DNA from: Ascidiella aspersa
Lineage: Eukaryota
DNA length: 64,000 nucleotides
Direction: 5' to 3'
Assembly: GCA_963924565.1 (NCBI GenBank)
Contig: OZ004610.1
Span: 4,216,001-4,280,000, forward strand
The notes under the pieces are model-generated. The model had not been told where the DNA came from. It saw only the letters and a list, made by a program, of their open reading frames with translations, and did not search any database. Each line of letters starts with the position of its first letter. Within the stretch, counting starts at the first letter, position 1. A program made the translations under genes and the position numbers. This document shows positions 35,952 through 49,822 of the stretch, piece after piece.

Positions 35952-37943
35952 TTATCGCACTAAATTTGATCTCAGAAACAAAATGGCTTCCAGCAAATCC
36001 TCCCTCATTGAAGCTCTAAGGTCAGACCGAATAATACGCAGAGCTGAAAACAACCGTTCCACACTAACTTGAGTAGGAGGAAGAGCAGTTACAGTGTAGG
36101 CAACCTTCTTAACATTTTCTGGATAGTGCTCTATTGCTTGAAGAACACTAAGTTTAGAGGACCGGTCAATCTTTTCCAATTCAATTAATGACTTTTCAAA
36201 GCATGCTTTAAATGCAGCTTCTGGATTTGGTTCTTCTCTTTCATTTGCAAGGCGCTGCCTTTTAGCCTGTTTATCCAGATGCTTTTCAAAATCAAACGAA
36301 TCGTCAGATAGAGAAACTGTTGAGGATGTTTCATGTTCACTCAATGAAGATGTGGCATTTTCACATGTTTCGTTTGTTCTTGAGAATTGATGCATACGAA
36401 AGGCTATATCAACTAATGCACGTTTGCCTCTTAGTGCTTGTTCCCTGTTTAAGGTTATTCTGTACATAGGATCAACATATATCGCCGACAAAAGCACATC
36501 ATTGTTCATAAGTTTTGTCTCCCGGTGTTGCATTGAGGTCCTGATTGCATCAGCTAACTTTCCACCAATTTGGGAAAGCTTAAAAATGAGTGTCTTCCAC
36601 TCTTTGTAGAAAGAGCCTGGTGTTAAATGTGCAGATTGCATTCGTTTTGTTGCAAGGAAAGGGTGTCGTAGCAATTCTTCCAGCTGTTTGATTTCATTCC
36701 ATTGATTTTCTGTTAAAGTGATATTAGGGTGTGCCAGATCCAGTAAACTGTTCTTTAATTCTAATAAACGTTGAATCATGAGATAGGTACTGCCCCACCT
36801 TGTTGCTTGGTCGATAATTGCACCTTTTTTCAATTTCCGTTTTAGAATTGCATCTATCTTGGGTGTCCTGGCTGTTATAGCAATTTGACGAACTTTACTA
36901 ATAAATCTATCCATATATTTGTCCTTAAGGCCATCTCTCACAGCTAACTGCAGTGTGTGAACTGCACAACGCATATGAGCTGTTTTTGAATAATCTGACA
37001 TTCCTGGCAGACACAAAACACTATTCAATACTTCATCTAAATCACTATTATTTTCATCGGCTTCACTTTCTGCTAAAACTCCCCTTATGCTACTGGTTTC
37101 ACCCATCTCAACTTCAGTTAAAACATCCAACTCAAAGCTGTCTTCTTCAATCTCAGCTTCTGTTAAAATATTTGATTCATTGTATTTTTCGATTGAACTT
37201 GCCATGTTTGAAGCGTTATCAGTAACAATGGCTAAAATTTGTTGTTTTGTCAAATTAAATTCTTTGAGAACAGTTTCAAGTGTGTACTGAAGAAAATCAC
37301 TGTTGTGTTGTGCTCGAGTATCGCGAACTGCCAGCGTTTGAATATCTAGCCTGTTGTTGGAATTAACAAACTGCACATTTATTGCAAGATAGTTAACTCT
37401 GTGCCTTGTGCAGCCATCCATCTTAAGAAAGACAAATTTGTCTCTTAGTTCTTCTTTTAATACCTTTTTTGGATCTGCTGCTGCCCTTATAACCATCTTT
37501 CTAATTTCATGCCTTTCCAAAGACACTCCAAGTTTACCTGCCAGTTCTCCATTTAATCCTTTAAAACCTCTTGAAGAAAAGAAAGTTAGTGGAATACTAT
37601 TTTCTACCACCATTTCAATAATATGTTGTTTAAACTTATTCTTCGTCATTGATACAGTAACTTTTTCATTTGAAAAAAAATTATGAATCGTTTCTCTTGA
37701 CATTCCTTTATCTTTTAAGGATTGATTTCCAGACCCTGCACAGCTATTTTCAGAGTCTTGGCCATCCATTTTCTGGTAAACCTCTGGATGATTTCTTTCT
37801 AGATGTCTTTTCAAGTTGAAAGTTTTTCCTACTAATTTGGCACTGCAAATGGTTTCACTCACCTTGACTTGACAAATGAAACATCCTGACATATCACATT
37901 TTAAAAAATATTTAAAGACTGCAGACTTCTTTCTTTTAGCCAT
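35952..37943 (-). CDS. hAT transposase (BED zinc finger, DDE core, dimerisation domain), 663 aa, intact ORF
   Basis: VFKYF..C..C..NLKRHL...H (BED); MDGCT, TDNASNM, CAVHTLQL, TRWGSTYLM, SVERLFS; single uninterrupted ORF. Confidence 0.96.
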   Translation of the reverse strand: MAKRKKSAVFKYFLKCDMSGCFICQVKVSETICSAKLVGKTFNLKRHLERNHPEVYQKMDGQDSENSCAGSGNQSLKDKGMSRETIHNFFSNEKVTVSMTKNKFKQHIIEMVVENSIPLTFFSSRGFKGLNGELAGKLGVSLERHEIRKMVIRAAADPKKVLKEELRDKFVFLKMDGCTRHRVNYLAINVQFVNSNNRLDIQTLAVRDTRAQHNSDFLQYTLETVLKEFNLTKQQILAIVTDNASNMASSIEKYNESNILTEAEIEEDSFELDVLTEVEMGETSSIRGVLAESEADENNSDLDEVLNSVLCLPGMSDYSKTAHMRCAVHTLQLAVRDGLKDKYMDRFISKVRQIAITARTPKIDAILKRKLKKGAIIDQATRWGSTYLMIQRLLELKNSLLDLAHPNITLTENQWNEIKQLEELLRHPFLATKRMQSAHLTPGSFYKEWKTLIFKLSQIGGKLADAIRTSMQHRETKLMNNDVLLSAIYVDPMYRITLNREQALRGKRALVDIAFRMHQFSRTNETCENATSSLSEHETSSTVSLSDDSFDFEKHLDKQAKRQRLANEREEPNPEAAFKACFEKSLIELEKIDRSSKLSVLQAIEHYPENVKKVAYTVTALPPTQVSVERLFSALRIIRSDLRASMREDLLEAILFLRSNLVR

Positions 37944-38029
37944 TTTACATATACGCTACTATGTCTAGATTTCTGAAAAATAAAACGTAAAATTAGCTAC
38001 ACTAGGATAAAACAGATACAGAAATCAAG

Positions 38030-39433
38030 ACCAAAAGCTAGCCAACACACTAGCTAAACGAAGAAATTTCAAAGGCAAAAAAAACATATTTAGCCTCATT
38101 TTTTTAGAAAAAAAATTTTACCACAACAATAAGAATGATCTATATTTACAAAATAAAAATTAAAAAATTAAAAATTAAAAAAAATATTAATATTCAAAAT
38201 TAATATTCGCAACAATTTTTAATAAAAAATAATTTACGCAACTAGAGACCAACAAAATCGCATAGCGCTTGATAATACCTTTCCAACGATGCCACACATG
38301 ACTCGGTAAAAGTTGAGGCCATACGCTTTTATCGTCGATAACCGATCCTAAAATTCATAAGCGATCGCGGTAATTTTTAAACGCCCGTCACTTGCCCAAT
38401 TTAAAGTGCAAGTGAACGAAATTTTATCAAGACATTTCTACAAACCTTATAATGCCATAGAAAGAAAAAATAGTAAAAAATTTTAATGTTGAAAATATTT
38501 CAAATTTAGCATTTGTTATGCGTAATATCGAGTTTTTTCATCCCACCAACATCCGACCAAAAAAGACCCAAAAATCAATTTACGCAACTAGAGACCAACA
38601 AAATCGCATAGCGCTTGATAATACCTTTCCAACGATGCCACACATGACTCGGTAAAAGTTGAGGCCATACGCTTTTATCGTCGATAACCGATCCTAAAAT
38701 TCATAAGCGATCGCGGTAATTTTTAAACGCCCGTCACTTGCCCAATTTAAAGTGCAAGTGAACGAAATTTTATCAAGACATTTCTACAAACCTTATAATG
38801 CCATAGAAAGAAAAAATAGTAAAAAATTTCAATGTTGAAAATATTTCAAATTTAGCATTTGTTATGCGTAATATCGAGTTTTTCATCCCACCAACATCCG
38901 ACCAAAAAAGACCCAAAAATCAATTTACGCAACTAGAGACCAACAAAATCGCATAGCGCTTGATAATACCTTTCCAACGATGCCACACGTGACTCGGTAA
39001 AAGTTGAGGCCATACGCTTTTATCGTCGATAACCGATCCTAAAATTCATAAGCGATCGCGGTAATTTTTAAACGCCCGTCACTTGCCCAATTTAAAGTGC
39101 AAGTGAACGAAATTTTATCAAGACATTTCTACAAACCTTATAATGCCATAGAAAGAAAAAATAGTAAAAAATTTCAATGTTGAAAATATTTCAAATTTAG
39201 CATTTGTTATGCGTAATATCGAGTTTTTTCATCCCACCAACATCCGACCAAAAAAGACCCAAAAATCAATTTACGCAACTAGAGACCAACAAAATCGCAT
39301 AGCGCTTGATAATACCTTTCCAACGATGCCACACATGACTCGGTAAAAGTTGAGGCCATACGCTTTTATCGTCGATAACCGATCCTAAAATTCATAAGCT
39401 ATCGCGGTAATTTTTAAACGCCCGTCACTTGCC
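38030..39433 (+). repeat. Left TIR arm: ~200-bp AT-rich outer domain plus ~3.5 copies of a 346-bp unit
   Basis: aatttacgcaactagagacc at 38231, 38577, 38922, 39268. Confidence 0.96.
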
Positions 39434-40162
39434 TATTGTTCGAAATGATTTCAATAATCTCATATAGTTTTAAGAAAAAATGCCTTTGTTCTAACAACGT
39501 CCTCGCATTCATTGTCATTCTTTACGCTTTTAAAAGTCTTTGCGCCGGCTATTGTTCCCGGGGTAAAGGGCTGTTATCTTTTCGCACCAATTTCTAGAAC
39601 CAAACATGTAAAGCGAGAAAAGATTCTAGGAATGTTCTCTTTAAAAACTAGGTTTTGCTGTTGATAATTCAAATAGCGAAAAAGTTGTGAACATTTGCTT
39701 GTAAAACGAAATCGATATATTCAGGGGTTGTACTAGCGTGAAATAGTATTTTGATGTATACCGTTATTTTAATCCTTAGTTTTCCAGGTTGAGTATGCGC
39801 CATATCGCAATTTTCTTTAATAGGAGCTTCTTACTCAATACAGAAGACAGTTTACTTAAACTAAAAAAGTCAGTTGCACATTGTAATTTAAGCATGATTT
39901 TTGTAATTGTTTGAAATTAGAAATAGTACATACTAGAATGATGAAATAAAATTTAAAATCATAAAAAATATTTAAAAGTTAGATTAGAATGAATTTCCTG
40001 GGTTTAAATGTATATTAAGTCTAAAATGTGAATTGCCAGTTCAAAATATGTTTTACCTTAGGTAAGATTTTGGGTCAAGATGTCGTATTCCTATTTTTAA
40101 GACCAGATCCAAAAATATGTTTAATATTTCTGGTATTTTAGAGTTTTAACTTGGTTCAGCCT

Positions 40163-40215
40163 AGTTGTTTACCCAAAGTTGTTTACCCAAAGTTGTTTAC
40201 TCCGAAGTTGTTTAC
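40163..40215 (+). promoter_or_regulatory. Four tandem AGTTGTTTAC motifs (Forkhead-type TGTTTAC) upstream of the cargo gene
   Basis: Copies at 40163, 40177, 40191, 40206; function is inferred only. Confidence 0.4.
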
Positions 40216-40428
40216 CAGTTTTTAATTTGTTTGTTAGCATGGTCGGTATCAGCGACTGATCGGCCCGCTCGGGCTCAAGCGCCTGTAATCAATGGCTCAA
40301 GCAATCAACGAGACGCCTTCCATATAACGCGTGTGTAAGTACGTTTCTAATTCTAGTCTTTACGACATTCTCTACAGTGCAAATATACTGTCAAAATATT
40401 CAAAGATCATTACTCTTACTAATCAAGA

Positions 40429-43400
40429 ATGTATATTCAAACCGACGAAAGTACTTTCCGCTGGAGCAAGGTAAGAGTAAAATGAAATTTGTATTATTAT
40501 TTTCTTAAAGTAATTTACATTTTAAAAGTAGCTTACATCCTGTTATTTATCACAGGTTAGAGCCTTAGTTAAAGGTATTCGGCCTCCAGTGAAGTCCTAT
40601 GGCAGAGGAATTTGCGGGAAGCAAGTGAGCTGGAAGGTTCCTTTACCGAGCTCCCGCAAACGGCTCCTCTATGTTTCCGACAGCAATGCTCGGAACTTGG
40701 TTGAGCCCTGCCTCGTAAGGCCATCGTCCAACTTTGCGTTCGACGTTTGTGGCCTCAGTATTCCCGGGGGTACCACCAGGCATGGTATTACCGAGCTGTC
40801 AAACAGCCGAATACTGGATGGAGTTGCTGCCGTCGTTATTGGCCTTGGCACTAACGACGTGGTCAACAGCAGCCCGGAGGAAGCATCAGCCTATCCTTCG
40901 AGGTATTGTTTGATAATGTTTTATAAGTTTACCCTATAGACTTATTTCTTTTTACTATATTTCCTTTTAGACTTATTTCTGAGATCTTGGAGGATACGAG
41001 AGCGCTGATCCGCCTCACTAAAGTGTTGTATCCAGGAGCGAAGGTTGTTACACGTTTCTTAATGTGTAGTTTTAGTGTGTAGACAGTTTTTCATATACAA
41101 CTAATCATTGTAATTTGTTGCACTTAGATCTTCCACACCGGAGTGCTGCCCCAGTTGACGCCCCAGGGCTGCATGGTGCAGCAGCTGAACAGCGCGATGA
41201 GGATCGGCGTCGAGGAAGAAGGGGCGGAGTTCCTCGGCCTGGACGTCCCCTTCGCAAATGGGAAGTGGTCCGACAAACTCCATATTTCCTTGAGTGCTCT
41301 CCGTGTTTATTTTTTACAGATTGAAGAGAGAGTCACCAGGATCTTGGCCGAGGAGGAGAAGAGAGCTGTCCCGATCCCCCTGATGCGGGCCCTCAGCAAC
41401 TTTCCGACTCTTCCCACAACGGAGGCCCCGATTCCCCTGATGCGGACCCTCAGCAACTTCCCAGCTCTTCCCACAACGGAGGTGAGAGTATTTGCTTGTA
41501 TATGTGGTTTTTAACACAATTTTATTTTTTACGTTTTGTGTGTGAAAGCGATTATAGTACATTATAAACTTAAATATCCCTATTTCAGGTGTGTCACAAG
41601 ACGACCATGGAGGTAGATGTCGTGCGCACCACACAAAGTGCTGTTTCGCCTGTGGTAAGTGAAGCAAATATATTTTACCTATCTTTTTTGCAAATATTTG
41701 ATGATAATTTTCGTATTTGCAGATCTTTCCGAAGGCATTTAGAGGAAGCACCCCTGTTTCGTCGATGCTGGAATTTGGTTTTTCCGCAAATGAGGTAGGT
41801 CTTAAGATAACAAATTAATTCAACTTTATGCTATTCAAAATTATATTTCTTAAAGGGGAAGAGCGGGGAGTGGAAAATCATGGCAACGAGAAAGCCAGTG
41901 GCATCGATCGTCGGGGCCAAGAAGGACCTCCAGCCTGCAGTAAGCGATTTTGTAAAATCTTTATCATTTATCAATACTTAGTTAAGTTGGACCTTCAAAC
42001 GGAATTTTTTTGTAGACGACCGTTGGAGCACGGGTGTCGGCTCCATCGAGCAGTTGGCTCAAAAAGGTCGTCCCTAAGCCTGCGGTAAGTGATGCTGTAA
42101 AGGTTTTTTCAATACTTGTTTGAGTTGGACTTTTAAACAAAATTTACTTGTAGAGTGATGAAGATGAGTGGACTATCGTAGGATCACGAAAGTTCACTCG
42201 ATCGAGCAGCAGGATTAAAAAGGTGGACCCCAAGCCTGTGGTAAGTATTGTTGCAAAACTCTTTCAATACTTGCTAGATTTGATGCTCTAACGCAGTTTA
42301 TTTAAAGACGACTGTTGGAAAACTTCCTTCGTTTCCATTGAGCAGCGGGCTCAAAAAGGTGGATCCCAAGCCTGCAGTAAGTATTGTTGCAAAACTCTTT
42401 CAATACTCGCTAGATTTGATGCTCTAACGCAGTTTATTTACAGACGTCCGTTGGAAAACTTCCTTCGTTTCCATCGAGCAGCGGGCTCAAAAAGGTGGAT
42501 CCCAAGCCTGCGGTAAGTATTGTTGCAAAACTCTTTCAATACTCGCTAGATTTGATGCTCTAACGCAGTTTATTTACAGACGACCGTTGGAAAACTTCCT
42601 TCGTTTCCATCGAGCAGCGGGCTCAAAAAGGTGGATCCCAAGCCTGCGGTAAGTATTGTTGCAAAACTCTTTCAACACTCGCTAGATTTGATGCTCTAAC
42701 GCAGTTTATTTACAGACGACCGTTGGAAAACTTCCTTCGTTTCCATCGAGCAGCGGGCTCAAAAAGTTGGATCCCAAGCCTGCGGTAAGTATTGTTGCAA
42801 AACTCTTTCAATACTCGCTAGATTTGATGCTCTAACGCAGTTTATTTACAGACGACCGTTGGAAAACTTCCTTCGTTTCCATCGAGCAGCGGGCTCAAAA
42901 AGGTGGATCCCAAGCCTGCGGTAAGTATTGTTGCAAAACTCTTTCAACACTCGCTAGATTTGATGCTCTAACGCAGTTTATTTACAGACGACCGTTGGAA
43001 AACTTCCTTCGTTTCCATCGAGCAGCGGGCTCAAAAAGGTGGATCCCAAGCCTGCGGTAAGTATTGTTGCAAAACTCTTTCAATACTCGCTAGATTTGAT
43101 GCTCTAACGCAGTTTATTTACAGACGACCGTTGGAAAACTTCCTTCGTTTCCATCGAGCAGCGGGCTCAAAAAGGTGGATCCCAAGCCTGCGGTAAGTAT
43201 TGTTGCAAAACTCTTTCAATACTCGCTAGATTTGATGCTCTAACGCAGTTTATTTACAGACGATCGTTGGAGCACGGGCATCTACTCCTTCAACCAGCGG
43301 GCAAGCGAAAGAGGTATTAACCCCAGCGGTAAGTGTATATTTTTGCGAAACGTTTAGTGGTCAAAACAATTTGTGGTCGATCATCTAACTATATTTTCTT

Positions 43401-44378
43401 GTAGAAGACCGTAGGAGCACGGACATCTGCTTCTTCAACCAGCGGGCCAAAGAAAGTAGTATCCAATCCTGTGGTAAGTGTTGTTGAAAATAACATCCAC
43501 ATTGTGACCTTGGTTTTATCAACGTATTTATTTTTTTGCAGCCAAAGCAACGAATTTATGGTGGGGCACGTATGGTAGAAAAGTCGGATGATAAAATTAA
43601 ATTAATAAAAAGCGCAATTGATACGTTTGATTTTGACCGTTCGTGCAGTGCTAGTTGGATAACTTTGGTAGGCAAATTAAAAAAACGAAAAATGGCGAAA
43701 AAAGAGATTAGGTGCGAAGTTCGTAGTCTACAAAATTTTTTTGCGCAGCATGCTGACGAGTTTAGTGAAAATCAAGGTAATGAGAGTTTGTCAGTTCAGT
43801 GTGATAAAAATAGTGGCGCTGTGTTTTGTGCAGACAGTTGCGGTAGTAGCAATGGTGCTTTGTTGAATGTTGAGGATGTGTCTCGTATGGATATTGTAAA
43901 AAACGTGGTGAAAAGTAAGAGTCTTGACGTTAAGCAGAATGATAAAATAAAATTGATAAAGAGCGCAATTGAATCTTTTAATTTTGATCGTTCGTGCGGT
44001 GCTAGCTGGAAAATTTTAGTTGGCAAATTGAAAAAACGAAAAATGTCGAAGAAGGAGATTAGGGATGAAGTTCGTGGTCTACAGAATTTTTTTGCGCAAC
44101 ATGCTAACGAGTTTAGTGGAATTCGTGATTTGTCAGTTGAATGTGATAAAACTAGTGGCGATGTGTTTTGTGAAGACAGTTGCGGTAGTAGCAGTGGTGC
44201 TTCGGTTGTTGAAATTAGTGAAGATGAGTTTTGTAGTGAACCATTGTTGTGTGAGAGTCCAGTTGATCAATTGTCGTCGTTTGACGAAAATGAACCAGCT
44301 TTGTCTAACAGCATTAGTTGCGAGTTTTGGACTCCTGACACTAAAATATCGCTATTTTTTCTTTCTATGGCATTATAA
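40429..44378 (+). CDS. Transposon-borne SGNH/GDSL hydrolase-domain protein with 23-aa repeats and a duplicated C-terminal domain, ~883 aa, 19 coding exons
   Basis: Exons 40429-40470, 40556-40902, 40971-41043, 41128-41481, 41589-41654, 41723-41794, 41856-41939, 42016-42084, 42154-42240, seven 69-nt exons starting 42308/42444/42580/42716/42852/42988/43124, then 43260-43328, 43405-43473, 43542-44378. All are GT-AG and join without a stop. SGNH blocks: YVSDSNAR, IPGGTT, GLGTND, DKLH. The start codon is uncertain. Confidence 0.82.
42241..43260 (+). repeat. 136-bp tandem repeat (69-nt exon plus 67-nt intron), ~7.5 copies
   Basis: tttacag|ACGACCGTTGGAAAACTT...CCTGCG|gtaagt at exact 136-bp spacing. 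Confidence 0.97.
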
Positions 44379-46525
44379 GGTTTGTAGAAATGTCTTGATA
44401 AAATTTCGTTCACTTGCACTTTAAATTGGGCAAGTGACGGGCGTTTAAAAATTACCGCGATCGCTTATGAATTTTAGGATCGGTTATCGACGATAAAAGC
44501 GTATGGCCTCAACTTTTACCGAGTCATGTGTGGCATCGTTGGAAAGGTATTATCAAGCGCTATGCGATTTTGTTGGTCTCTAGTTGCGTAAATTGATTTT
44601 TGGGTCTTTTTTGGTCGGATGTTGGTGGGATGAAAAAACTCGATATTACGCATAACAAATGCTAAATTTGAAATATTTTCAACATTAAAATTTTTTACTA
44701 TTTTTTCTTTCTATGGCATTATAAGGTTTGTAGAAATGTCTTGATAAAATTTCGTTCACTTGCACTTTAAATTGGGCAAGTGACGGGCGTTTAAAAATTA
44801 CCGCGATCGCTTATGAATTTTAGGATCGGTTATCGACGATAAAAGCGTATGGCCTCAACTTTTACCGAGTCATGTGTGGCATCGTTGGAAAGGTATTATC
44901 AAGCGCTATGCGATTTTGTTGGTCTCTAGTTGCGTAAATTGATTTTTGGGTCTTTTTTGGTCGGATGTTGGTGGGATGAAAAAACTCGATATTACGCATA
45001 ACAAATGCTAAATTTGAAATATTTTCAACATTAAAATTTTTTACTATTTTTTCTTTCTATGGCATTATAAGGTTTGTAGAAATGTCTTGATAAAATTTCG
45101 TTCACTTGCACTTTAAATTGGGCAAGTGACGGGCGTTTAAAAATTACCGCGATCGCTTATGAATTTTAGGATCGGTTATCGACGATAAAAGCGTATGGCC
45201 TCAACTTTTACCGAGTCATGTGTGGCATCGTTGGAAAGGTATTATCAAGCGCTATGCGATTTTGTTGGTCTCTAGTTGCGTAAATTGATTTTTGGGTCTT
45301 TTTTGGTCGGATGTTGGTGGGATGAAAAAACTCGATATTACGCATAACAAATGCTAAATTTGAAATATTTTCAACATTAAAATTTTTTACTATTTTTTCT
45401 TTCTATGGCATTATAAGGTTTGTAGAAATGTCTTGATAAAATTTCGTTCACTTGCACTTTAAATTGGGCAAGTGACGGGCGTTTAAAAATTACCGCGATC
45501 GCTTATGAATTTTAGGATCGGTTATCGACGATAAAAGCGTATGGCCTCAACTTTTACCGAGTCATGTGTGGCATCGTTGGAAAGGTATTATCAAGCGCTA
45601 TGCGATTTTGTTGGTCTCTAGTTGCGTAAATTGATTTTTGGGTCTTTTTTGGTCGGATGTTGGTGGGATGAAAAAACTCGATATTACGCATAACAAATGC
45701 TAAATTTGAAATATTTTCAACATTGAAATTTTTTACTATTTTTTCTTTCTATGGCATTATAAGGTTTGTAGAAATGTCTTGATAAAATTTCGTTCACTTG
45801 CACTTTAAATTGGGCAAGTGACGGGCGTTTAAAAATTACCGCGATCGCTTATGAATTTTAGGATCGGTTATCGACGATAAAAGCGTATGGCCTCAACTTT
45901 TACCGAGTCATGTGTGGCATCGTTGGAAAGGTATTATCAAGCGCTATGCGATTTTGTTGGTCTCTAGTTGCGTAAATTGATTTTTGGGTCTTTTTTGGTC
46001 GGATGTTGGTGGGATGAAAAAACTCGATATTACGCATAACAAATGCTAAATTTGAAATATTTTCAACATTAAAATTTTTTACTATTTTTTCTTTCTATGG
46101 CATTATAAGGTTTGTAGAAATGTCTTGATAAAATTTCGTTCACTTGCACTTTAAATTGGGCAAGTGACGGGCGTTTAAAAATTACCGCGATCGCTTATGA
46201 ATTTTAGGATCGGTTATCGACGATAAAAGCGTATGGCCTCAACTTTTACCGAGTCATGTGTGGCATCGTTGGAAAGGTATTATCAAGCGCTATGCGATTT
46301 TGTTGGTCTCTAGTTGCGTAAATTATTTTTTATTAAAAATTGTTGCGAATATTAATTTTGAATATTAATATTTTTTTTAATTTTTAATTTTTTAATTTTT
46401 ATTTTGTAAATATAGATCATTCTTATTGTTGTGGTAAAATTTTTTTTCTAAAAAAATGAGGCTAAATATGTTTTTTTTGCCTTTGAAATTTCTTCGTTTA
46501 GCTAGTGTGTTGGCTAGCTTTTGGT
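44352..46525 (-). repeat. Right TIR arm: ~5.7 inverted copies of the 346-bp unit plus the outer domain
   Basis: Reverse complement of the left arm with about two extra units. Confidence 0.96.
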
Positions 46526-47915
46526 GAAATCAAGTTGCCTTAACACAGTGGTTATCAAACTGTTTTTCTTTGGAACAAGTCAACGCCTTTGGAATAACAA
46601 TCTGTTGGATTTGATTGTCACCAACAATGGTCTTTTTGTGCAAACAAAGCCCATTTTACAACAAAGCCCATTTTATTTATTGTTTTTAAAAATTATAATC
46701 AACTGCTGCAGATTTTTGGAGCAATAATTTCAAATACAGATATCATGGAATAATAATATCTGCAAGGATTTTATTACCACAATAGAGTTTAAAACGAATT
46801 AATTGTGTGACGCCCTGTGTAAGTTCACTGTAGTGAGCCCTTTTTTAGCATTATATCCTGTTTGTCTTGTGCATTGTCTGTACTGAAGTTAACATTAATA
46901 TTTTAATGTGTCGCAACACGTCAGCACATCAAATTAATTCTTTGTTTTATCGCCTTAATGTTGCGTCATGAAAGTTTTTGTTTAAATTCGATTGCCGATA
47001 TCTCTTGCTAGAGTTTGCAACGAATGCCTTGTTACACCAATTTTTATGCGTCAGAGCTGTATGTGATGTTACGTATATCCGTTTAATGTGAGCGCTTTGT
47101 TTTGAAATTCGCCTTATTGTCAACAATCCATTATTTTTAGATCGAAGCGCTTTTGTTCAAGCCATATTTGGACAAAAATATTATTTCCGTCTATAAGAGT
47201 CGAGAGAAAAAGGTTTAGACCACGCCTTGTTATCACGTGATATTTTGTTAAGTATTATAAGAATTAATGACGTAAATCTTTCTTTATCGCAGAAATTTTC
47301 TTAACTGATTCTCGTCTATAAATAGCGTGTTCAATCAATATAAACAAGAAGAGAGAGAGGGAGAGAGAGATGAGGTTTTTATAGCTTCTACTCAGACAGC
47401 AAACTTGAGTGCTTTTGTGACTGAACCAGAAGAGAGGCTTTTTCAGCTTTGACTGAAGACAGCAAAATTGACTGTTCATGTATCTGAACTAAAAGAAAGA
47501 ATTGGACCTGTCTGGCCTCACGAAGACAGGCCATCTCAAATCTTGTAGGAGTGTGGTCGATTCATCTTGGCAATTATATAAATGAAGACTCATTAATCTG
47601 CCATACCCCCACAAATGTAATTCTTAGAACAGAAATTTAACTCTCTATTATAAGCTCTATGGCCTCTATAATTCCCTTTTGTACCTCTTTGCAATATATA
47701 TCATGACAGACAACCAGAAGAGATTAATATTGTGACACAAATTTCTCCATACGAGTTACAAAATCCCCCCTCCCCCCTTTATATTTTATATCAGTTTACA
47801 GTAAACTTGCTTTATTTCAAACCAAGGCCAGTTTTCAAAAATTGCTTTTGGCTAACTAATATTGGAGATGGAACAAAATGTAATTTCGTAGCTTTATCCC
47901 CTCAAATTGAAAAAT

Positions 47916-48066
47916 GGCTCCGGCTCCGGCTCCAGCTCCACATAAAATAATAAAACTGGCTCCGGCTCCGGCTCCAGCTCCACAAAAATAATAAAAATGG
48001 CTCCAGCTCCAGCTCCGGCTCCAGAGAAAATGCTTAGCTCCGGGCTCCAGCTCCGGCTCCGGCTCC
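47916..48066. repeat. hAT right subterminal GGCTCC/AGCTCC repeats
   Basis: Repeated ggctccggctccagctcc blocks abutting the TIR. Confidence 0.9.
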
Positions 48067-49822
48067 CCAGCCCTGATTTTAAGGTGTGTTTATATTTATA
48101 TAAATCCATAATCTTTTGCTTACTTTTTGTAGTGGAATTTGACAAACAAAAAGAAATACCAGAAGATGAAAATAATGGTCAGTAGAAATATAAAATTTAA
48201 GTTTTTACAATTTTTTTTAACCATGATAGGTTGACTTTTTTAAGAATTGGGTACCATAAAATAAGATGTATGATAATGAAGGATTGGAACCAATATTCTA
48301 TGCCAAATCATAGTAGTATTGGTGGTACTTGTCCGATACCAAATTAAAATAGGCATTTAGCGATGCCCCTATGCAGCCATTTAACTTGAATAACTTTGAC
48401 AGTAAAAAAAACTATTTTTAATTGTGTTGACCATCGGCATTTGCACTCTTATCTTTTATTTTTTCATAACATGGCCAGTGATCATTATTTTTTTTAAGTC
48501 TCTACTTGTAAATTTATTTCATAAAAATATGTAAATTTATTTCATAAAAATATGTGGAAACCCCAGAGTAATAATTCAATTTGTAACCAGATCTTAGACC
48601 GCTGTACCTTTTATCCAAAATTTATGCATTGGTATGGCATTGAAATAACACGAATACAACAGATCTGTCTGCTAGAAGTGTTTCTATATCCAAAAACTGT
48701 GTGCCAATTTGGCCTTTCACTCCTGCATCAATTTTTCCATGTTGGTTTTCTTGATATTTAAATTAGGTTGAATGTTTTTGCACTCTGGATTAAAAATTTT
48801 TCATGTTATTTTCTAATGTTAAATTGCTAATTTAGAGTTATTTTAAATCAGAAATGGATGATAGTTGTGCGTCACAACAAAAGGCAACTACTCAAGAGGA
48901 AAGACTAAATGGTAAATTTATTGTTTGTATAACACTTTTAAGGAAAATGTAATTTTTTATACAGCTTAGTGCAGTGGTTACAAACCTTTTTCTCCTGTGC
49001 ACCATTTTAGTCGATATTCAAATATAATTCCCCCTTACAAATTAAGTTTGCTAAAATATTGTTTACATTAATATTTTAATGTAATTCTTACAACAGAAAT
49101 TAAACTCTTGATTATATCTCTAGATATGATGTCACAAATCATCAAGTGACCTAGACTTGCAAATTAATAATTCGTAAACAAGTGCAAAGCTTTATCTTTT
49201 TTCTTTTCTCGAAATTTCTTTGAGTATCCACTTTAAATCAATTATACAAGAACTTTCATTTTTTTAGCTCATATATAGCGAATGCAGCAATAACACATAA
49301 CACAAATTCCCCCCTAGTGATTCAGTCCATTGTTGCAAATTGCAGTTATATATTAAGCTGTAAGTGCTTAGATACACACCTTAAAATGTAATTCTGTTAT
49401 TATTTCCTTGACAAAAACATAGAAATTGGGAAGAATTACTAAGCGCGTCCATGCCACCCAACAACTTAAGAAATGGTCTCCTTTTAAATTTCTGTAAACT
49501 TATATTCTTTTATGGGATGAACCCTTTTCAAGTTGTCATTCTAGAAAAAAATATACGTTGGGTAACTGTTTTCTCCTTTTACAGTCAAAATTGATCTTCT
49601 TCTGGAAATGCAAAAAGAACTGGACAAGCAAGTTAGAAGAGCTTTAGTAAATATTTTCAAAACAGACCAACCTCTAGAATTTGATTTACTTGAAGAGCCG
49701 ATGGATAGCATGTCACAATTGAATCAATTAGAAGAAAGTATAAAAGAAAACAAAACTCTTCGTCAAAACATGGTGAGCACAGGGTGTTATCAGCAGTTTA
49801 AAAATTATGATACTATATAAAT

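Follow-up and report, generated by a model that had tools for sequence, protein, structure and literature searches.

We analysed a 64,000-nucleotide stretch of the Ascidiella aspersa genome (C4:4216001-4280000, in an assembly of 308 Mb; hereafter the window), which contains an 8.5 kb transposable element with long inverted arms and, between them, an intron-rich gene with an SGNH hydrolase domain. A preliminary description had interpreted this element as a Foldback-like transposon that carries an esterase gene as cargo instead of a transposase. Comparison with related elements in this genome and with proteins of other tunicates leads us to a different reading, which we consider highly probable: the element would be a young deletion derivative of a Foldback-type element (MULE-NOF, Mutator) whose complete relatives encode an SGNH domain, a linker, a transposase, an Ulp1-like protease and a PHD finger.

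The element and its SGNH gene

The element is flanked by a 9-bp duplication, GAAATCAAG, that can be read directly on both sides, and its outermost 854 nt (38030-38883 versus 45672-46525) were 100% complementary in an inverted-pair analysis. Both arms are modular, being composed largely of 346-bp units over 1.4 kb on the left and 2.2 kb on the right (Table 1), and the 16-nt tip does not recur in the interior of these modules, even when up to 3 mismatches are allowed. The sequence around the element is itself a repeat, and two of its paralogues (L040 and L041) run uninterrupted through the insertion point. Because each of these empty sites carries a single GAAATCAAG, insertion with a 9-bp target-site duplication (TSD) is proven. 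Both the TSD and the kilobase-long, near-identical modular terminal inverted repeats (TIRs) of the preliminary description are borne out by these observations. An assembly artefact was considered and rejected on the strength of the empty sites and of the many further copies with separate duplications.

Between the arms, we reproduced exactly the 19-exon, 883-codon gene that had been proposed: all 18 introns are GT-AG, no internal stop interrupts the frame, and GC content is 0.49 in exons versus 0.30 in introns. The middle of the gene is a tandem array in which, from exon 10, each unit of 136 bp comprises a 69-nt phase-0 exon and a 67-nt intron. As had also been stated, no DDE transposase is present in the window copy. 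The region from the left arm to the start codon (39434-40428) also occurs in other copies of the family, within long matches that span the left arm and this 5′ region and reach up to 41783-43271.

The putative SGNH domain has its four motif blocks, SDSN, PGG, GTND and DKLH, in exons 2 and 4, and each of them aligns with its counterpart in Styela and Ciona homologues and in a distant family of the same genome (L039). Searched singly against Pfam, the window exons gave no SGNH match (PF13472/PF00657), while the homologues P0014 (41.7 bits) and P0019 (41.6 bits) exceed the cut-off of PF13472, Lipase_GDSL_2 (32.9 bits). Exon 2 has only 20 relatives among 1.84 billion protein representatives, and of the eight whose names were checked, most are uncharacterised Ciona intestinalis or Styela clava proteins. 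A fold check, which the preliminary description had proposed, was run on the Styela homologue P0016 (210 residues, 40% identical to exon 2), standing in for the window protein. The model (predicted local distance difference test, pLDDT, 88.5) retrieved nearly exclusively SGNH acylhydrolases, sialate O-acetylesterases and platelet-activating factor acetylhydrolases as its top Foldseek matches, with 3 designed scaffolds among the top matches listed and the zebrafish L2 ORF1 esterase (ZfL2-1) at rank 32. P0016 is predicted from this model to adopt the SGNH fold, a three-layer alpha/beta/alpha arrangement. Together, the motif blocks, the homologues that pass PF13472 and the modelled fold of P0016 uphold the original SGNH call, and we conclude from the sequence comparisons that the window gene carries an SGNH domain.

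Between the window and its sister family (below), the ratio of non-synonymous to synonymous substitution (dN/dS) across the SGNH domain is 0.19, reflecting 17.7 synonymous and 11.3 non-synonymous differences. Because of this low ratio, and because the catalytic residues are retained in families down to 45% identity, we conclude that the SGNH domain has been maintained in a working gene.

Complete relatives and the transposase

The working gene is best represented by a sister element (L035 and L038), which has 733-nt arms with 345-bp modules and is flanked by a duplication of GTCAAAAGT. Its modules are ~69% identical to the 346-bp modules of the window and its SGNH exons are 94-95% identical; its exons and splice sites match those of the window gene. 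The last exon, of ~1,200 codons, continues in frame for ~900 codons beyond a shared FWTPDTKI motif. The exon that starts with the shared linker sequence runs unbroken into the transposase, and the exons upstream of it keep their phase.

This last exon encodes a DDE transposase, probably of NOF/Foldback type, an Ulp1-like protease and a PHD finger, the last of which lies in the extension. The extension is 27-35% identical to fish proteins, mostly with Peptidase_C48, one of which has PHD and Macro domains instead, and a match to yeast Ulp1 was obtained with the family profile. The extension also matches, with an E value of 3e-27, an octocoral protein that takes its name from the NOF-FB 120.7 kDa protein; an Atlas cluster bearing the NOF name (score 0.77) provides a lead only. 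In a profile search of the protein collection only three more relatives were recovered, and the Drosophila NOF protein was not among them. The alignment of the transposase (A3) shows the motifs D-A-T-G, C-D-G and C-x-x-H-x-x-K-N, followed by N-x-T-x-G-x-x-E, a pattern that we take to be the one expected of a Mutator-type DDE enzyme. When the core was modelled (L035:4464-6362; pLDDT 75-88 in the core and 63 overall), its best Foldseek match was ISCth4 of the IS256 family (probability 1.0), followed by Hermes, the P element, Transib and RAG1, with template modelling (TM) scores that were low, at 0.2-0.33. The model predicts for the sister transposase the RNase H-like DDE fold of the IS256/MULE-hAT-P-Transib group.

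The same arrangement recurs at greater distances. L039, which is just 46% identical, has the same order of parts, with SGNH joined to transposase and with fewer introns; its second splice junction has many in-frame solutions and no unique one. In Styela, the RefSeq model P0015 joins SGNH to the transposase N-terminus, and in Ciona P0013 joins it to Ulp1 and PHD. Because sister and distant families and Styela show the same exons fused to a transposase, we regard the SGNH exons as belonging to the transposon's own gene rather than as cargo. The comparisons identify the SGNH domain as the N-terminal part of that gene, with the transposase in the last exon of complete relatives, and the proposal of an esterase in place of a transposase is not supported, the SGNH exons being the 5′ part of a transposase gene in the sister families.

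Directly upstream of the transposase, L035, L039 and Styela P0015 also keep the small uncharacterised domain that the window gene encodes in its last exon. In the window this domain is present as two copies (43581-44202; 84-92% identical, ~350 bp apart) with the motif KIKLIKSAI..F.FDRSC.ASW, and it had no Pfam match. The K/P-rich linker has been expanded differently in each family: by 136-bp units in the window, by a four-exon unit of 571 bp repeated ~3 times in L035 and L038, and as long peptide repeats within one exon, without introns, in L039 and L047. The last of these (L047, C6:917000-925999), together with at least 7 similar loci, constitutes a further multi-copy family whose SGNH exons are ~40% identical to those of the window; downstream of them comes a giant exon containing PHD-like fingers and repeats of the PPSSAKGVGERPKPLSV type. 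Further afield, in a protein of the cichlid Oreochromis (P0001) a Macro domain separates the transposase from the Ulp1-like part, and a transposase relative in the octocoral Paramuricea (P0005) has a USP/UCH deubiquitinase.

Deletion, rival readings and a possible mechanism

Where the window gene departs from these complete genes, its structure is that of a deletion. Homology to the complete gene stops at ~44348 and a repeat module begins at 44352, so that the final nine codons and the stop derive from module sequence. Other copies of the window's family retain pieces of the transposase, namely residues 1-317 in L032, 428-920 in L034 and 625-920 in L037, and L032 runs on into its piece at the very point of the window's junction. 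In L031, part of the loop is inverted. Internal-deletion series of this kind are common among DNA transposons. Because the frame ends at the junction and other copies keep transposase pieces, we read the gene as a truncated transposase gene and not as a captured host gene, and these alignments identify the window copy as a young, non-autonomous internal-deletion derivative. The expectation that a copy without transposase must be mobilised in trans agrees with this, and a search for longer, transposase-bearing copies was successful in the sister families and recovered the partial pieces in L032, L034 and L037, though no intact one in the window's own family.

That the family moved recently is clear from its other copies. 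With 3 mismatches or fewer, the 30-nt tip occurs 47 times genome-wide and its reversed control not once, giving at least 47 family ends in the 308-Mb genome. Paired ends delimit MITE-like copies (miniature inverted-repeat transposable elements) of 0.7-2.6 kb, one copy of 4.1 kb and long copies of 7.6-9.7 kb; a perfect 9-bp duplication, different each time, flanks 11 of the 13 end pairs, and the copies are 97-99.7% identical to the window's element. The preliminary description had anticipated both a recently mobile, multi-copy family and copies with TSDs of their own. The two pairs in which a matching 9-bp duplication is absent, C3:22914249/22921896 (L007/L006) and C1:16929401/16930575 (L026/L025), suggest recombination between copies or two neighbouring partial elements. 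SGNH exons are present many times across the genome, and 84%-identical intact copies lie at C8:12.35 Mb and C7:21.31 Mb. A stretch of less than 1 Mb at C2:37.0-37.95 Mb also contains dozens of fragments of SGNH exons from this lineage, and may represent either a graveyard of transposons or a small-RNA cluster.

We classify the element as Foldback/Mutator-type and cut-and-paste, a superfamily placement made by TSD length, arm architecture, name-based homology to NOF, and fold. The preliminary description had come to the same type, which the TSD length and the arms with subterminal tandem repeats fit. Most Foldback elements have been assigned to Mutator (PMC4079207), and the RepeatMasker class for the Foldback type is DNA/MULE-NOF.

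Several results weigh against this placement or against the derivation of the window copy from a complete relative. PF10551 (MULE) did not match L035 or L039 at E values up to 1, although it exceeds its cut-off at 21 other loci of the genome (e.g. L043), none of the window's lineage. An hhalign comparison of the transposase profile with one canonical MULE locus of the genome gave a probability of 0.15, which is not significant. The assembly yielded no intact transposase belonging to the window's family; the best transposase outside the family is 87% identical and that of the sister family 77%. Finally, one RNA-seq run of the same species, of which ~6% was read, yielded no reads or splice joints linking SGNH to the transposase exon. 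It contained four reads (95-99% identity) over 40100-42260, upstream of the 136-bp array, and no splice joints, and we consider it uninformative, neither supporting expression nor providing evidence against it. As a separate observation, the canonical MULEs at the 21 PF10551 loci share no sequence relationship with the NOF-type family.

Had an ordinary host SGNH esterase been captured as cargo replacing the transposase, in the manner of a Pack-MULE, one would see what the window copy by itself displays: no transposase, and SGNH in its only long frame. Yet in the sister family, in the distant families and in Styela P0015 these exons adjoin a transposase and read into it in frame. Pieces of transposase also survive in deletion derivatives of the window's family, and the frame ends in a repeat module. 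The relatives of exon 2, just 20 in number, are where named uncharacterised tunicate proteins, some of them fused to transposase, Ulp1 or PHD. Capture is thus largely refuted and, in our judgement, scarcely credible; a one-off acquisition of a host gene is likewise contradicted by the SGNH exons lying within the transposase gene of three divergent families and of Styela. A reading of the gene as the first open reading frame (ORF1) of a CR1/L2 retroelement (long interspersed nuclear element, LINE) was also tried and was rejected in view of the 18 introns, the inverted arms, the 9-bp TSD and the relatives that encode a DDE transposase.

The remaining alternatives accept the derivation and differ over the gene products. 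The truncated 883-residue SGNH-linker protein might itself be under selection, for example as a regulator of transposition like truncated P-element repressors, and the open frame, intact splice sites and catalytic residues would agree with this, as would short SGNH-only models in Styela (P0016, P0019). Copies differ by only ~1%, however, so that youth alone explains an open frame, other copies are cut elsewhere, and RNA reads are almost absent. The sole other copy with a whole loop, L032, has deletions of 1 nt and 8 nt in exons 4 and 5, and because of these two frameshifts we conclude that the truncated gene is not being maintained; selection on its product appears very unlikely. It is also unlikely that complete elements make the SGNH protein and the transposase as separate products, from two promoters or by alternative splicing or polyadenylation. 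PIF/Harbinger, CACTA and many other DNA transposon families do employ two proteins, and no joining transcript was seen in the one RNA run, but the sister exon is unbroken from the shared linker into the transposase, phase and splice sites are kept upstream of it, and the Styela RefSeq model P0015 joins SGNH to the transposase N-terminus.

Returning to the derivation from an SGNH-transposase element, the complete gene would encode, in order, the SGNH domain, the K/P-rich linker, the small uncharacterised domain, a NOF-type DDE transposase, an Ulp1-like cysteine protease and a PHD finger. A deletion would have brought the last exon up against the inner 346-bp modules, removing the transposase, Ulp1 and PHD, and the 883-codon frame would still be open owing to the youth of the copy. 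A DDE transposase acting in trans would identify the element by its tips, and probably also by the subterminal modules, excise it and paste it with a 9-bp staggered cut. The source of this transposase may be a sister family with the same tip, ACCARAAGCTA, or an autonomous copy that the assembly lacks. By analogy with Muta1, the 346-bp modules may be extra transposase-binding sites, and the SGNH domain would be an accessory hydrolase.

Because relatives carry Macro or USP beside Ulp1 and PHD, we weakly favour, by analogy, the idea that the SGNH domain strips modifications from proteins or chromatin; the less favoured alternative is a membrane role like the one that has been proposed for LINE esterases (PMC3905857). 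Taken further, NOF-type transposases might be accompanied by swappable ‘eraser’ enzymes (SGNH in tunicates, Macro in cichlids, USP in an octocoral), always beside an Ulp1-like deSUMOylase and a PHD chromatin reader, with SGNH as an active deacylase that helps the element to reach or escape silenced chromatin. We put this forward as a conjecture that is more doubtful than probable. If true, this would be the first demonstration of an esterase domain working for a cut-and-paste transposase, and a parallel to the unexplained esterases of LINEs and rotifer elements.

The window element is therefore an ordinary deletion derivative, and the family behind it is less ordinary. Within the literature, which was the scope of our search (Repbase and Dfam lay outside it), we found no published SGNH domain fused to a cut-and-paste DNA transposase. 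Very young, and diverse within this genome, the family offers a practical system for studying the roles of the esterase, Ulp1 and PHD in transposition, and it may yield an active chordate Foldback transposase.

The features of the window are collected in Table 1. Around the element, copies of the host repeat (37630-38029 and 46526-46909) that are 99-100% identical occur at C2:6.139 Mb, C5:20.20 Mb and C9:11.75 Mb, and the host repeat must therefore itself be very young. A part of it (46910-47613, ~704 bp) is missing from L040 and L041, and is either a second nested insertion in the window or a deletion in those two paralogues. Also outside the element, at 47910-48078, ~42-bp units rich in GCTCCGGCTCC form a short tandem array.

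Table 1. Coordinates of the element and its parts, in positions of the window
Feature	Position	Strand	Basis
Left TSD copy, GAAATCAAG	38021..38029	.	Direct reading; single in empty sites L040 and L041
Left TIR arm: 194-nt unique tip (38030-38223), then ~3.5 modules of 346 bp	38030..39433	+	Inverted pairs I1-I14; direct family D5
Left subterminal and 5′ region, from arm to start codon; presumed promoter and 5′ untranslated region	39434..40428	+	Common to other family copies
19-exon, 883-codon gene, read as a truncated SGNH-linker-transposase gene	40429..44378	+	GT-AG introns, open frame, GC contrast
Exons 1-5	40429-40470, 40556-40902, 40971-41043, 41128-41481, 41589-41654	+	
Putative SGNH hydrolase domain, exons 2-4 (SDSN, PGG, GTND, DKLH)	40556..41481	+	Tiles SGNH domains of Styela and Ciona homologues
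Exons 6-9	41723-41794, 41856-41939, 42016-42084, 42154-42240	+	
Tandem exon-plus-intron array (exons 8-18), K/P-rich linker	42016..43473	+	Direct repeat families D1, D4 and D6; exon table
Exons 10-16, seven of 69 nt	First at 42308, period 136 nt	+	
Exons 17-19	43260-43328, 43405-43473, 43542-44378	+	
Last exon, with two copies of the small uncharacterised domain	43542..44378	+	Homology to full-length gene up to ~44348
Apparent internal deletion junction; coding for transposase, Ulp1 and PHD missing	44349..44352	.	Comparison with L032 and L035
Right TIR arm: ~5.7 modules of 346 bp and 194-nt tip	44352..46525	-	Direct families D2/D3; inverted pairs I1-I14
Right TSD copy, GAAATCAAG	46526..46534	.	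Direct reading; empty sites

Comparison with known systems

The closest likeness is to Drosophila FB-NOF, which shares with the window's family long arms of tandem modules, a 9-bp TSD and many copies without coding capacity. By annotation, the likeness would extend to the encoded protein, whose relatives are named after the NOF-FB 120.7 kDa protein and have Peptidase_C48 and PHD. The window's modules differ from those of FB-NOF in length (346 bp versus tens of bp) and its gene is rich in introns. An N-terminal SGNH domain is present in the window's lineage and in none of the descriptions of NOF-type proteins that we found. Plant KI-MULEs carry an Ulp1-like protease, and the DNA transposon Ginger likewise has a protein with a C48/Ulp1-type protease (PMC2836005). 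Both belong to other transposase lineages, however, and are without SGNH.

Two further Mutator elements resemble the window's element in their ends. Muta1 of Aedes aegypti, a ‘type 2 foldback’ MULE, is a cut-and-paste element whose arms have subterminal tandem repeats, and these repeats strengthen transposase binding and excision (PMC5499845). By this analogy Muta1 offers the best guide to the possible working of the 346-bp modules, although its transposase, unlike that of the window's lineage, is a short, canonical one that matches PF10551 and is without SGNH, Ulp1 and PHD. Tm1 of root-knot nematodes (Mutator/Foldback) has variable composite arms, 9-bp TSDs and MITE-like, non-coding and transposase-bearing members, as does the window's family (PMC3169594), but its transposase is of the Phantom subclass, has 496 aa and is without accessory enzyme domains.

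For the SGNH domain itself, the known parallels are retroelements. SGNH/GDSL esterases with intact catalytic residues occur in the ORF1 proteins (ORF1p) of CR1, L2 and RTEX LINEs and as GDSL ORFs in long terminal repeat (LTR) and Penelope-like elements of bdelloid rotifers (PMC3905857, PMC5408684). The link to LINE ORF1p esterases that the preliminary description had drawn holds at the level of the fold and fails at that of the sequence, no similarity being detectable between the SGNH domain of the window's lineage and the retroelement esterases; for this reason it was probably recruited independently of them. The retroelement esterases also differ in being encoded by separate ORFs without introns, whereas the window's lineage, a DNA transposon, has its SGNH domain in fusion with a DDE transposase. 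For the esterases of LINE ORF1 and of the rotifer LTR and Penelope-like elements, the roles usually considered involve membranes or RNA-protein particles. A conserved and apparently catalytic SGNH domain on a DDE transposase, which has no RNA intermediate, suggests that the esterase may serve a need common to very different mobile elements.

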